From Wallemia ichthyophaga EXF-994 (lineage: Eukaryota; Fungi; Basidiomycota): a stretch of 32,000 nt of DNA. Both the position numbers and the translations under genes were made by a program. Location: assembly GCF_000400465.1 (NCBI RefSeq), contig NW_008806275.1, positions 369,656-401,655 of the forward strand, written 5' to 3'. Below are positions 454 to 30,579 of this stretch, piece after piece. Under the pieces are notes generated by a model. That model was given only the letters and a program-made list of their open reading frames with translations. It made no database searches and was not told the origin of the DNA. The number at the start of each line of letters is the position of its first letter. Within the stretch, counting starts at the first letter, position 1.

Positions 454-3500
<3,047 letters not shown>

Positions 3501-3522: not shown

Positions 3523-4410
3523 ATGTCGCAAAATCTAAGTTACCTACAATCTCAACTCAACAATAGAAAGTCCCACTCTGAAAAAATCTCTTCAAGCTTG
3601 AATAAGCCTTCTCGTCATAAGGATGATTTCATTAAGTCCAATAGAGTCTTCGCATACCAGCACGAGCTTGATAAGCACGAAAGGCGGGATAGAATCAATA
3701 AACGTCGTGAAGATTTTGCACTCACTGAGGCCCAAGATGAAGCTCGTAAACAAAAGATGAAAGAAGGCATCAAACGATACAACGCACTCAAAGCCAACAA
3801 GGCTAAACCTACATCTGAAGAGAAGGATTTATTACAATTTGACGGTAATCTGACATCCGACTCTTCTGATTACGATTCAGACGATCATAATCTGGTATTT
3901 ACTTGATTACAGCTTATTATGCTGTATCTAACTTGTCGTTCACAGGATGCACTCACTGAAGCTGAGGATGAACTAGGTAGAACCGTCTTAGTCTCTAGAA
4001 GACAGAAAGAGATACTCAATCCGTTATCAAACAAGCACTACAGAGTCAAAGGGACAGCCATATATGGTGATAAATTAAGTACGGATTGGAACGTATATGA
4101 GCAAAGTCCTGAAGAGATTGAACGGTTCAAAGCTCACTATTCAGATAAGGGTTACATACGCGATCCAACAAAAGATAAAGATCAGCGTCATAAAGGAGCT
4201 TCCTTCTATAAATTTGGTGATGATTCAATTAAACAGCAACAAATCAATGACTTAAAAGCCAGTCACCATGAAACTATCATCAAGAGAGATCAAGCCGCGT
4301 ATTCATACAGAAATGCCCGTATGATGCTCGTAAAACAATATCAACCGAATAGGATAATAGGCAGAAATCGGGCGGACAATCTGATTGATGAAGCTATAAA
4401 CACATCGTAG
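3523..4410 (+). CDS. CCDC174/DUF4078-like coiled-coil protein
   Basis: ORFs 3523 and 3919 join via intron 3895-3945 (GTATTT..TCTAAC..CACAG). Motifs EAEDELGRT and DQRHKGASFYKFGDD..QQQINDLKASHHET resemble DUF4078. A probable in-frame 42-nt intron lies at 4319-4360. Confidence 0.75.
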
Positions 4411-4620: not shown

Positions 4621-6938
4621 CTACTCCTGATATATTATTATTTCATTGCTATCAACATTTGGATCGATTGCTTGTTGAACAGCATCAATAATGTCTAACT
4701 GATGATCATCAATATCTCGCATTCTTTCCTCGATCATTTCTCCAACATCAATGCAAGATTCGTATTCGTGATTGTGATGTCCGTTATCGTCATTGACAGC
4801 ATCAACTTCAGATATAGTACCAATAGAACTATTTCTTCTGCTTGAGGGTATACTTTGCAAACTCATCCATCGTTTTACGGGCGCAAATGATCTAGTTGGA
4901 GTACTTGGAGGTGTCTTTATAGTTTGAAATGGCGACATGTTTTTTCGATTTTTAAGATTTTTGGGTAGATATTTCAGTGTACTGTTCATGTTTGTAGAGA
5001 AATGTCTCTCCAAGGATGTAAATAGTCTAGGTCGATAAAAATGCTGCCAATAGTCATGAGACAAATGAGCTTCAGCTTTGCTTTTACCCTGATACTCCAA
5101 ATCTTTTGTCTCTTTAATATTATTGTCTTGGTCAATTTTAAAAAATTCTGCTGATGGCAAAGGAATCGAGGTTAGAGAATCAAATGAAACTGAAGATGAA
5201 GTTTGTCCAAGAAATAAATCTATGGCTGCTTGCTTATCAGCGTCTAATAAAGAATTTGCGTAGTATCTCTTAATATTTTCAACGAGATCACGTGAGTGAC
5301 TGTGTATATTAGAAAGATACTAATTTAAGAGATCAACCTCACCTATTCCATTGATTAATTTTGCGATAAGTTTCCACTCGATTAACGAGCGCACTTCCGC
5401 CATACTGAAGAGCAATCGCTAAAACATTTTAACAACATTAGCAAAGTTCACGAGAAGAGGAGGCTTGAAAAGACTTACTATCACCATGATCATGGTACAT
5501 TTCAGTAAGCATATTGACAGCATCAGTATCATGTACAAGAGCAGGCTTCTCAATAATACCGAGAGCGTGCAATTGATGAGTGAAAGCCACCTTTCCAATG
5601 ACAAATTGTGCAGCATTCGTACGATCCAAACAGTCAACACAATTTGTTCTAGTTATGCCACATTGCCGCTGATCGTTTTTGGAATGATAAAACCCCGTAC
5701 TCTGAATGGAATCAATGGCAAAATTTTCCAAGAATCCTATGACATCTTGATTAGATTTAGATGCTCTTGACATGTCCCACGAGGTCATTTTGATTTTGTT
5801 ATCTTGACTTAAAAATTGATTAAGGTGTTGAATACACTCATTATAGCTATGAAGTAATTTTGATTCCCTTGGCACGCGTTCGCGACACTTTACCAAATTT
5901 AAAACAAAGGTTGGAGAGCCGTAACGTTGGAAGAGATTCTTAAAATGAATAGCAGCGTTACGATAGTAAGGATCAACAGGTGCAACTAAGGAAATTTAGT
6001 GTGGTAAGAGACAATTAAACATGAAGAAACTCACTGTTAATCATAGGCTTCAGCCCCATTTGAGGATCCTGACTCCAAAATAAAGGTACAGAACCTCTAT
6101 ATTGTAAGAATGAAGTAAAATTAGGATTAATTTTGTGATCCAAATTCTGTGAAGTGAAGGGTGTAGTTAAGGTATCAGAGACGATTTGTTCAGATTCGAC
6201 TTCATTAGCTACGTGTCCAAATTCATTTGAACCTCTTTTTAGGTATCTGGCACCGGCATAATGACGAGATCTTCTAGCGATCAAAGTGACGTAGATGACA
6301 CGACCGAAGACAATTAATTTAGATTGATCAACAAAGCCATGAATGATTGGTAGAATCCAAGAAGACTTTGGTAAATGATTTGGATTCAAGATGGGAGTGA
6401 GTAGATGATGATTCCAAATGAAGCGATCGTTGAAATGAAAGAAATTGAAAGGAAGATTGGAAGTCAAGTTAGATTGCAAAGAGCATGTCAAGTCGTAAGA
6501 GTAACTAAAGTAAAAGTTCTTACTTAAGTCGACTTGTTTGAACGTATTGAGCAATTTAGACTCAAGTTTACCTCCCAAAAACGACTTTTTTGGGGAAAAG
6601 TTAATCAATAGAGTATCGTCAACGTGATAAATGTAATGACCACCTAATAAGCAAACAGGGGATCTTCTAGTGATGAGAATGAGATAAGGGAACTTCGTGA
6701 ACTTGATAAAACCAAGAACGCCGTAAAAGTTGATAACCTTATTCAATCCACCAGATTCTAATTCAATCAATTTCAAGAGCTGATTAACATCTTTAAAAGT
6801 ATAAACGTTGTCATCATCTTCAATTTGGATTTCGATAGATTTATGTATTTTAATGACTTTATAAAAATCAAGAGATTGATTAGTACCAATAATGATGAAG
6901 CTTGATTTGATTTCATATAAAGTGAACTTGTCCAGCAT
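4621..6938 (-). CDS. FIG4: SAC-domain PI(3,5)P2 5-phosphatase
   Basis: SAC1-homology domain (FYFSYSYDLT, RRSRHYAGARYLKRG, RGSVPLFWSQ), catalytic CX5R RTNCVDCLDRTN, and FIG4-type LQYGGSALVN and DADKQAAIDLFLG after three GT-AG introns. Confidence 0.95.
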
Positions 6939-7027: not shown

Positions 7028-7940
7028 TTAACAGCAACCACCTTTCTTTGTTTCATTGTCAGAAGTTGGTGTCACGGTAATAGTTTCTCCATTTGAAGGT
7101 TTAATTGAATCGCCACCTTCTAAAGCTTTAGTTGCGACTAATTGATAGATGTCAGTTAAAATATTTTGGAAAGCAGATTCAACGTTTGTGGAATCTAAGG
7201 CTGAAGTTTCAATGAATCTAATTGGGTTAGAAGAAGGTGTACCGTCTTCTAATTTAGACTTTTCCTCTGTAAAGGATTGAGCTTCTGCGGTTGGTACAGC
7301 TCGAAGGTGTTTCAAGTCTGATTTGTTTCCAACGAGCATGATGACAATGTTTGAATCGGCGTGATCTTTTAACTCTTTCAACCAGCGTTCAACGTTTGCG
7401 AAACTAGATTGTTTACCAATATCGTAAACAAGTAAAGCACCGACAGCACCTCTGTAGTAAGCAGAAGTGATAGCTCTATAGCGTTCTTGACCAGCTTTAA
7501 GGGAGGTTAGAGAGGTTTGGTTTAGACAAAGCAGTAAAAGGAGTTACCAGTATCCCAAATTTGAGCTTTTATAGTCTTTTGATCGACTTGTAAAGATCTA
7601 GTGGCGAACTCGACGCCAATAGTAGATTTAGAGTCCATATTGAATTCATTTCTAGTGAATCTGGATAGTAGATTACTATTGAGCTGTTGAGTGAGTTTAC
7701 TTTAAGGTGAATAGATACGTCTTACGATTTACCAACACCACTATCTATAAAGTATCACTGTTTGTAAGAGTATTTGATATAATTAACAAAGCTCACCACC
7801 GATTAAAACTACGTAAATCCATGTCAATGTAGGTCAAATTGCAGGAAATTCTACTCATTTTAAACAAGTAATCATAAGAGCTTGCTTCTGTTGCCCTGTT
7901 TAAATATTAACAAGGTACAAATCACATTTTATACAAACAT
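7028..7940 (-). CDS. YPT31: Rab11/Ypt31-family small GTPase
   Basis: Spliced [78 protein letters not shown]-terminal GGCC. ATG is split by intron 7896-7938; intron 7813-7858 is probably AT-AC. Confidence 0.96.
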
Positions 7941-28544: not shown

Positions 28545-30017
28545 ATGATGGAGGTCAGCCTTAGAGATCTAAAATTATTATTATTAGGCGGTGTATCTGC
28601 GAGCGCTATTATTTGGCTTTCTAGATGTTTATTCGTGACCCAGCCCAAAAAATCTGTAACTAGCAGCTCTTTAGCTTCATCGTCGACACACACACCTGCG
28701 GAGCACAGTGAGGACCTGATAAGAGAGCAGCTATCGAGGAATTATGCGTTTTTAGGCGACGACTCAATGTCTAAGATACGCGGCTCGTTCGTCGTGATCA
28801 TTGGTTTGGGCGGCGTCGGATCCTGGGCCACGACGATGCTGGTACGCTCTGGAGTGTCTAAAGTTAGGCTGGTAGACTTTGATCAAGTCACTTTATCCTC
28901 TCTCAACAGACACGCAACAGCTCAATTAAAAGACGTTGGGAAATCTAAAGTGGATGGTGTGAAACAATACCTCAGCTCAGTGGCACCTTGGTGCCAAATA
29001 GAAGCCCAAAATGAGCTCTGGAATGAAGGCGTAGATGGGGATAGACTGCTGTCAGGTAGTCCTGATTATGTTATCGACGCAATCGATCACATACCGACCA
29101 AAGTCGCTTTATTGAAGAGGTGTAAGCAACTCAACCTCAATGTTCTGTCTTGTGCAGGCGCGGGTGCTAAACAAGATCCCTCACGTGTCCAGATTGCTGA
29201 CATGTCCAACACATTCGAAGACCCTCTCGCAAGAACGATCAGACGCAAGTTGAGATCTGATGGCGTTGGTATACCGTGGGTGTAACATTTCTTAGGAGTG
29301 TAAATCAATAACAGAACTTCAGTGTTGTCTATTCAACTGAGAAGCCAGGTGATGTCAAACTTCTTCCACTCCCTGAGGAAGAATTTGCCAAAGGCAAGGT
29401 GCAGGAGTTGTCTGCCTTTGATGATTTTAGAGTGAGACTTCTTCCTGTGTTGGGTGGGTTGCAACCATGTTCTTTGTTGCACCGCTGACACTCAAATCAG
29501 GCCCCCTTCCTGCAATGTTCGGTTTGGCTGCGTCGACTCATATCCTATTATCGTTGGCAGGTAAAGAGGACTACGCGCCATTGCCTGTGAAGAACAGACC
29601 GAAGCTATACGAGAAGGTTTTTAGAGACTTCCACAAGAAGGAAGGAAAGCCTACTGTGTACGGCTCAAATGAGTGAGAATACTATCTTCAATAAACCAAC
29701 CATACTGATGGACACGCAGACCAATATGCATCGACGTAAATCAAGTTGGCTACATCCTGGACGAGATCTACAATGCCAAGAGCGCTCTTCCACCACACAA
29801 CACCCTGTCTAGACCAGCTTTAGTTAGATGGGACACGTCCAAGCCACTCTCTATCACCAACTTGGCTGCTATGGAATACAAAGATGCTCAGCATCATTAC
29901 GGATCACTATTGAGTCAATGCGAAGGGTCTGGTCTACTAGTTTGGGGTCAGGAAGCGCAAGATTACTTCACTAGAAAGTCGAAGGAAGTTGAAAAGGATC
30001 TCAAAGCATTAGAGTAG
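28545..30017 (+). CDS. TCD1: ThiF/E1-like tRNA threonylcarbamoyladenosine dehydratase
   Basis: N-terminal TM, EQLSRNYAFLG, GLGGVGSW, VDFDQVTLSSLNRH, VIDAIDH, DPLARTIRRKL, VVYSTEKP, LGPLPAMFG; three introns, stop 30015-30017. Confidence 0.92.
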
Positions 30018-30376: not shown

Positions 30377-30465
30377 TTGTCAGCGTTAGAAAGTGTCTTT
30401 TGGTAAATAGTTATCTTCAGCGAGTTTACAGAAGCAGAACTGTTATTTACTTGATCATCATCGAA
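30377..30465 (-). ncRNA. snR61: box C/D snoRNA, snR61/SNORD38-like (25S Am1133, yeast numbering)
   Basis: Box C ATGATGA 30461-30455; guide CAGTTCTGCTT (30442-30432) antisense to 25S AAGCAGAACUG, followed by D'-like CTGT; box D CTGA 30383-30380; ~14-bp external stem GTGCGAATGGGCGTA/TACGCTATTCGCAC. Confidence 0.85.
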
Positions 30466-30579
30466 TACGCCCATTCGCACCTCAACAGCAATTTACTTAC
30501 AAATTGGCTTTCCCAATTATTGAGTTCATTCAAATCTGCATGGCCAGGTCAGCGACTTCAAAATGCGTTAAGTCCGCAG

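Follow-up and report, generated by a model that had tools for sequence, protein, structure and literature searches.

AT-AC type II introns have AT...AC ends and a 5′ splice site that departs from the U2-type consensus only at +1, and are known but very rare. Those of human SCN4A/SCN5A and TAF2 have conserved borders (Wu & Krainer 1997; Sheth et al. 2006, PMC1557818). Sheth et al. counted 15 in human, 6 in mouse and 3 in fly, whereas worm and Arabidopsis had none, and the type makes up about 0.003-0.008% of animal introns, which sets a low prior for any candidate (PMC1557818). The corresponding pair of changes has also been engineered: in yeast and human introns, a G1A mutation was rescued by changing the last base from G to C (Parker & Siliciano 1993 and later work, summarised in PMC1557818). 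In fungal annotations AT-AC introns are rare (PMC7072748), and AT-AC II introns have been hypothesised in the xylanase genes of filamentous fungi (PMC1557818).

The intron described here lies in the RAB11/YPT31 gene of the halophilic fungus Wallemia ichthyophaga and is a new example of this kind. It was studied in a window of 32,000 nt, by which we mean the whole stretch of DNA that was analysed. On the basis of the genomic sequence, we consider it highly probable that positions 7858-7813 of the minus strand form a genuine spliceosomal AT-AC type II intron, with U2-type signals otherwise, and that this is the main junction K13|V14 of the gene. It resembles the human introns in its ends, its 5′ site, its conserved borders and its rarity. 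It differs from them in belonging to a basidiomycete without minor spliceosome, in its length of 46 nt and in its host gene, which encodes an essential housekeeping GTPase; moreover, sister species of Wallemia differ, AT-AC versus GT-AG, at the same boundaries, and the use of the major spliceosome is one that we infer. With the engineered double mutants it shares the pair of changes and the predicted A/C mechanism, but the Wallemia case is natural, fixed and conserved, whereas the laboratory rescue was only partial. The xylanase introns are likewise fungal and hypothetical, with U2-like signals, but they belong to another gene and another phylum. U12-type AT-AC introns have the same terminal dinucleotides; their 5′ and branch sites are different, and the clade of Wallemia lacks the minor spliceosome (PMC10639083). 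A literature search found no paper joining Wallemia and AT-AC introns.

The RAB11/YPT31 gene of Wallemia

The coding span covers 7028-7940 of the minus strand, and its spliced translation is a protein of 222 amino acids with a C-terminal GGCC prenylation motif. The assignment to RAB11/YPT31, originally made from the sequence alone, was borne out by homologue search: the protein is 99% identical to W. ichthyophaga proteins (Rab-11A in UniRef), 89-93% identical to those of W. mellicola and 66-76% identical to the named Rab11/Ypt3 of other fungi, plants and animals. It has the Ras-family G domain (PF00071 is precomputed on its homologues), the Rab11-type motifs DYLFKVVLIGDSGVGKS...GGCC and the C-terminal CC site. 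The gene is under strong purifying selection, with 11-16 amino-acid differences between lineages against third-position differences of 41-60%.

Exon 1 contributes only the AT of the start codon (7927-7926, alternatively 7940-7939), and intron 1, which splits this codon as AT|G, occupies 7896-7925 (30 nt, donor GTGATT) or, in its alternative form, 7938-7896 (43 nt, donor GTTTGT). Such a start-codon-splitting intron (AT|GT...AG|G) was found in all four Wallemia lineages, namely W. ichthyophaga, W. mellicola, W. hederae and KERN, an uncultured Wallemia-like lineage; in the relatives it is seen at loci L001 (~2915-2968), L007 and L023. Exon 2 (7895-7859) is followed, after the intron in question, by exon 3, a 16-nt micro-exon GTAGTTTTAATCGGTG at 7797-7812 that codes for VVLIG and the first base of D. 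Exon 4 is a 19-nt micro-exon, ATAGTGGTGTTGGTAAATC, at 7726-7744; exon 5 spans 7675-7548 and the last exon, including the TAA stop, 7494-7028, all on the minus strand.

A still smaller exon of 5 nt, coding for part of KS-N-LL, is common to W. mellicola, W. hederae and Cryptococcus gattii, and we take it to be old because all three carry it. In the relatives it reads TAATC (L001, 3179-3183), CAATC (L007, ~3272-3276) and TAACT (L033). W. ichthyophaga no longer has the intron that follows it, so that TAATCTACTATCC is contiguous from 7675 onward; in the KERN lineage both flanking introns are gone. The 5-nt exon is skipped by public models. The KERN fungus recurs in several metagenomes (ENA KERN20-1 and others, and Logan runs; L008, L023-L032). 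The C-terminal segment of its Rab11 is 86% identical (P0133); GC3 is ~0.2. In its RAB11, introns 3 and 4 are missing and AITSA|YYRG is interrupted by an additional intron. The gene is neighboured by LSM upstream, as in Wallemia, and by HbrB downstream, unlike Wallemia.

Wallemia Rab11 also carries a specific insertion of ~11-14 residues before FIETSALD (7259-7218, minus strand). The inserted DNA is bounded by GTCTAA...AATTAG, measures 42 nt, is in frame and could be mistaken for an intron; it is judged to be coding because it is conserved at the protein level across lineages. In W. hederae a separate intron (GTAGGC...CACAG) lies within this insertion.

Boundaries of the probable intron at K13|V14

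On the minus strand the region reads ...TAC TTG TTT AAA|ATGAGTAGAATTTCCTGCAATTTGACCTACATTGACATGGATTTAC|GTA GTT TTA ATC GGT G|GTGAGC..., with AT at 7858-7857 and AC at 7814-7813. The intron (ATGAGTAG...TTGAC...TTTAC, 46 nt, phase 0) was delimited by direct reading, by enumeration of splice-site pairs and by comparison with relatives, and its excision gives YDYLFK-VVLIGDSGVGKS. In the enumeration, every GT, GC or AT donor was combined with every AG or AC acceptor between exon 2 and exon 3. Positions 7858-7813 form the sole pair that gives LFKVVLIGD without gain or loss, so that the AT-AC ends stand at boundaries which restore both the frame and the protein. This agrees with the original prediction, in which removal of the same segment was said to restore LFK-VVLIGD and all coordinates of which match ours.

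It had also been claimed that there is one GT-AG alternative only, giving LFK-MILIGD, and the enumeration confirmed this as well: 7854-7809 (GTAGAA...ACGTAG, 46 nt; GT at 7854-7853, AG at 7810-7809) is the sole frame-preserving GT-AG pair, and the NCBI model P0005 uses it. If this pair alone were spliced, the AT-AC ends would be a chance shadow and Wallemia Rab11 would have MILIGD. The overwhelming rule of GT-AG termini speaks for such a reading, as does a control from elsewhere in the window. An ORF-joining candidate GT-AG intron at 29673-29719 of the plus strand (GTGAGA...CAG, 47 nt) is shadowed in frame by ATGAGT...CAC at 29669-29715, 4 nt upstream, which is the mirror image of the RAB11 case and indicates that such pairs arise by chance.

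The donor GTAGAA had been dismissed as poor. Weak it is, but this point is indecisive alone, as the ORF-joining candidates of the window include introns with unambiguous yet weak donors without G at +5, namely GTATTT (3895-3945, plus strand), GTAACT (7547-7495, minus strand) and GTATAT (2298-2251, minus strand). Further variable donors are GTAGGT in a candidate at 4624 (minus strand) and GTAGGC in W. hederae. The donor candidates of the window are defined solely by ORF continuity and codon usage. Two attempts were made at a splice consensus: when ORFs were joined by means of an EM-trained weight matrix, false candidates predominated, and addition of a codon-usage filter left ~16 confident groups, too few for a reliable weight matrix though sufficient to establish GTGAGT and GTAAGT as the commonest donors and the existence of weak ones. 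As far as the genomic sequence tells, the 5′ splice sites of the compact W. ichthyophaga genome appear rather degenerate. Weak donors thus occur in the genus, which favours splicing of the GT-AG pair to the extent that strength alone cannot dismiss GTAGAA.

The relatives are more informative. The boundaries read AAA|ATGAGTAG...TTTAC|GTAGTT (46 nt) in W. ichthyophaga and AAA|ATGAGTAGC...GTTTAC|GTAGTG (51 nt) in six strains of W. mellicola and a second lineage of the sebi complex, where the intron starts with ATGAGTAG as well. In the two haplotypes of the KERN lineage they read AAA|ATAAGTAT...ATATAC|GTAGTC (50-53 nt). The AT...AC termini predicted for W. ichthyophaga are therefore shared, at this position, by three deeply divergent lineages with intron interiors that cannot be aligned, and the borders are conserved in orthologous genes. 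At identical boundaries, GT-AG introns are found in W. hederae (AAA|GTGAGT...TTACAG|GTGGTT, 44 nt), the sister species of W. ichthyophaga (PMC6738226), and in Cryptococcus gattii ypt3 (AAG|GTATGG...ATATAG|GTCGTC, K|V, phase 0). W. hederae does not have the shifted alternative, because its GTGG contains no AG. The presence of GT-AG introns at K|V in phase 0 in W. hederae and Cryptococcus implies that this position is old, and the AT-AC reading leaves it unmoved. The two KERN haplotypes differ by indels inside the AT-AC intron and by none at its ends.

At third codon positions the three AT-AC lineages diverge by 0.41-0.60, which leaves the intron interior effectively randomised. Nevertheless, the 3′ end is TAC in all of them though the flanking intron is scrambled, against CAG in W. 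hederae and TAG in C. gattii. In the 5′ site, +2 and +4 to +6 are the same in all lineages; +7 is A wherever the ends are AT-AC, and T in W. hederae. The donor of the shifted pair varies between the AT-AC lineages (GTAGAA, GTAGCA and GTATTT).

Comparison of the two readings at the protein level leads in the same direction. With the AT-AC junction, all differences between lineages fall at free sites, that is, at intron +3 (G/A, both purines), at the third base of V14, at the third base of V15 (T/G/C/T) and at the paired +1/-1. With the GT-AG junction, the same differences make residues 14-15 MI, MM and II versus VV, in an otherwise identical stretch of the beta-1 strand and P-loop. Among 115 instances of the Rab11 motif in the top hits, these two residues are VV in 110, IV in 3, MV in 1 and LV in 1, the second being V throughout. 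Splicing at the GT-AG pair alone would require I, M and I where V stands in 115/115 Rab11 relatives. It would further need a slide of 4 nt relative to W. hederae and Cryptococcus that restores exactly the universal VV; put otherwise, the intron would have slid in three lineages and returned in W. hederae, where VV happens to be recreated. It gives no reason for the retention of A, C and G, its positions -6 to -4, in three otherwise scrambled introns. Taken together, retention of the AT-AC pair over deep divergence and the fact that W. hederae and Cryptococcus have GT-AG introns with these very boundaries amount to more than chance, and we regard exclusive use of the GT-AG pair as very improbable.

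One observation counts in its favour. The four bases after the AC, GTAG at 7812-7809 (minus strand), comprise the codon of V14 (GTA) and the first base of V15, and contain the AG at 7810-7809, which is strictly conserved. V14 is encoded by GTA in all three AT-AC lineages, where GTA is used in 1/11, 4/11 and 0/11 of the other conserved valine codons, and agreement of all three lineages is limited to 13 of 62 four-fold sites. Since GTA is rare yet kept, and few four-fold sites are identical, the AG at exon +3/+4 looks selected; judged by the genomic sequence, it is conserved beyond expectation, and a plain AT-AC model does not account for it. The AT-AC conclusion is left standing, because the evidence against exclusive use of the GT-AG pair is much stronger, though this AG may reflect dual use at a minor level or an auxiliary function.

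The same conservation could mean that both pairs are spliced appreciably, 7858-7813 giving a VV isoform and 7854-7809 an MI isoform of Rab11. Each pair keeps the frame and removes 46 nt, and both the AC and the downstream AG are kept in the three AT-AC lineages, the latter by way of a rare valine codon. An isoform under selection would hardly drift between MI, MM and II in the invariant beta-1 strand and P-loop, however, and the shifted donor is weak and unconserved, so that appreciable dual use seems unlikely to us.

A third possibility, put forward tentatively and also rated as less probable than its absence, is that the AG 4 nt downstream of the AC is a selected part of the splicing device, as a helper, or alternatively that the in-frame GT-AG pair is an evolutionary bridge. 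In a fungus with short introns, the first catalytic step may already depend on a 3′ AG; a helper AG would then aid early recognition of the 3′ site, for instance by the small U2AF subunit, and the A/C pairing would pick the AC for ligation. As a bridge, an in-frame GT-AG pair could let an essential gene pass between the GT-AG and AT-AC states.

Signals and predicted mechanism

The highly probable AT-AC intron was compared with the signals of both spliceosomes. Its 5′ splice site, A|TGAGTAG at 7851-7858 (minus strand), is U2-type at +2 to +7 and has A for G at +1. As RNA, the sites of the AT-AC lineages are A|UGAGUA or A|UAAGUAU and match the U2-type consensus except at +1, which is the criterion of Sheth et al. 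2006 (PMC1557818). ATGAGT had been described as the GTGAGT consensus of this genome with only +1 changed, and the window is in line with this: GTGAGT and GTAAGT are the commonest donors among its ORF-joining candidates, GTGAGT foremost.

The 5′ end of U1 is conserved as AUACUUACCUG. In each of the three AT-AC lineages its duplex with the intron is most stable in the AT register, while the shifted register has GUA only, three contiguous matches; U1 complementarity thus prefers the AT register, a further point against splicing of the GT-AG pair alone.

At the 3′ side, TTGAC at 7823-7827 (minus strand) is the likely branch site, of yUnAy type, with a putative branch A at 7824, 11 nt from the AC end; a second TTGAC was read directly at 7837-7833 of the same strand. 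The relatives have GCTAAC, TTAAC and CCTAAAC/CTGAT at the equivalent place. The 3′ splice site itself is TAC (7813-7815, minus strand) in place of YAG, and TAC is kept in all AT-AC lineages.

The AT-AC termini and a branch-to-3′ distance of ~11 nt, which suits U12 introns, would be compatible with splicing by the minor spliceosome. A U12-type intron is expected to have /ATATCCTT at the 5′ site and TCCTTAAC as a branch site 10-15 nt from the 3′ end. The 5′ sites found here are ATGAGTAG or ATAAGTAT, not ATATCCTT, and the branch-region motifs TTGAC, TTAAC and CTAAAC are of yUnAy type, with no TCCTTAAC; the branch site, as far as it can be assigned, is thus U2-like rather than U12, as originally proposed. 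In addition, no convincing minor introns are found in Ascomycota and Basidiomycota, which have lost most or all minor snRNAs (PMC10639083). A U12-type intron is therefore scarcely conceivable here. The absence of a minor spliceosome from Dikarya, together with the U2-like 5′ site, points to a U2-dependent intron of AT-AC type II; the predicted classification is supported by the U1 register, the absence of ATATCCTT and the lack of minor snRNAs in Basidiomycota (PMC10639083). An Rfam scan of the window gave a snoRNA only, a C/D-box snoRNA of snR61/Z1/Z11 at 30383-30466 (minus strand), with 55.8 bits against a gathering score of 45.

The following course of splicing would be consistent with these signals. 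U1 would pair with AUGAGUA in the AT register, and the major spliceosome would cleave before A(+1). In the second step, a non-Watson-Crick pair of A(+1) and C(-1) would replace the G/G pair, so that the exons would be joined after AC and the AG 4 nt downstream would be bypassed. The G-to-A and G-to-C changes would then be a natural compensatory pair, with G...G in W. hederae and A...C in W. ichthyophaga.

The readings were weighed by multiplying a prior of ~1 in 10,000 for an AT-AC II intron by rough likelihood ratios for five lines of evidence, all of these being our own estimates and not computed statistics. The lines were the restored VV, the intron position shared with W. hederae and Cryptococcus, the conservation of AC together with the next G, the placement of the variation, and the GTA anomaly, which counts against. 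By these rough estimates AT-AC splicing leads by two to three orders of magnitude. We temper this for model error and for the genomic nature of the evidence, and settle on a strong probability for AT-AC as the main junction, a small one for dual use and a smaller one still for GT-AG only.

If RNA confirms the AT-AC junction, Wallemia would provide a conserved natural example of A(+1)/C(-1) terminal bases in an organism with the major spliceosome alone. The sister species, with G...G and A...C in one intron, form a built-in evolutionary control. Moreover, a 46-nt intron in an essential gene is a tractable substrate for the handling of AT-AC introns by the major spliceosome and for the purpose of the AG four bases on; the in-frame GT-AG pair conserved beside the AT-AC pair is a further notable trait.

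Genomic copies, RNA-derived sequence and gene models

Non-canonical termini may also result from an error at 7858 or 7813, made in sequencing or in assembly, or from decay of a pseudogene. Nothing was found that speaks for either. Seven fetched W. ichthyophaga loci, which represent 16 contigs (12 + 4), show zero differences within the intron; the one SNP among them, at 7753, lies in the next intron. Position 7858 is hence A, as originally read, and not G. The terminal bases are the same throughout the W. ichthyophaga loci, six W. mellicola strains and several independent contigs from metagenomes and Logan, and the strong purifying selection on RAB11 argues against a non-functional copy. An artefact can be set aside as exceedingly improbable.

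Splicing at the AT-AC pair is expected to give the mRNA junction TTTAAA|GTAGTTTTAATC, with TTGTTTAAAGTAGTTTTAATCGGTGATAGTGG as diagnostic string, and splicing at the GT-AG pair TTTAAAATGA|TTTTAATC, with TTGTTTAAAATGATTTTAATCGGTGATAGTGG. HiSeq RNA-seq data exist for W. ichthyophaga EXF-994 (Zajc et al. 2013, PMC3849046). RNA-derived sequence was sought in the 90% cluster of the gene, which held only genomic ORFs and annotation models, and the spliced form was sought in the Logan and ENA contigs L012, L020 and L022, in which the introns are still present. In JGI metagenome contigs, a protein-guided scan with the Wallemia-specific segment gave no match, and neither did a metagenome scan with a degenerate DNA pattern across either spliced junction. 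A second homologue search, with a profile of the Wallemia-specific C-terminus, returned more contigs of the lineages in hand and no lineage beyond them.

It was foreseen that annotators would mis-model this gene, and every inspected public model is wrong here except that of JGI. Of the public W. ichthyophaga models, P0005 starts with MILIGDSGVGK, from an ATG at 7857-7855 and the GT-AG pair, and P0122 starts with MDLHSGVGK. The models from the W. mellicola population genomes have nonsense N-termini, and that of W. hederae is garbled after LFK; MAKER, whose ab initio predictors included Augustus, had been used to annotate the population genomes (PMC6738226). The JGI model of W. mellicola CBS 633.66 (P0125) is the sole inspected public model with VVLIGD. 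It also carries KSSVLSRF, which is impossible with canonical junctions, the 5-nt exon being skipped. P0125 was rejected as cDNA evidence because of these further non-canonical junctions, which suggest that it was probably built from homology and not from cDNA and is not independent evidence.

The split start codon, the AT-AC intron and the micro-exons (16 and 19 nt, and 5 nt in relatives) account for the truncated or garbled state of RAB11 in essentially all Wallemia annotations; gene finders limited to GT-AG lose conserved genes of this sort. Public gene models were rejected as an unreliable guide to exon structure, in view of two apparent fusions at this locus. A W. ichthyophaga model near RAB11 joins LSM and DPM3 domains (L013, 440-1414), and a model of 2814 amino acids upstream of RAB11 (L021, 1-4415) combines a dynein light intermediate chain with a methyltransferase and a P-type ATPase.
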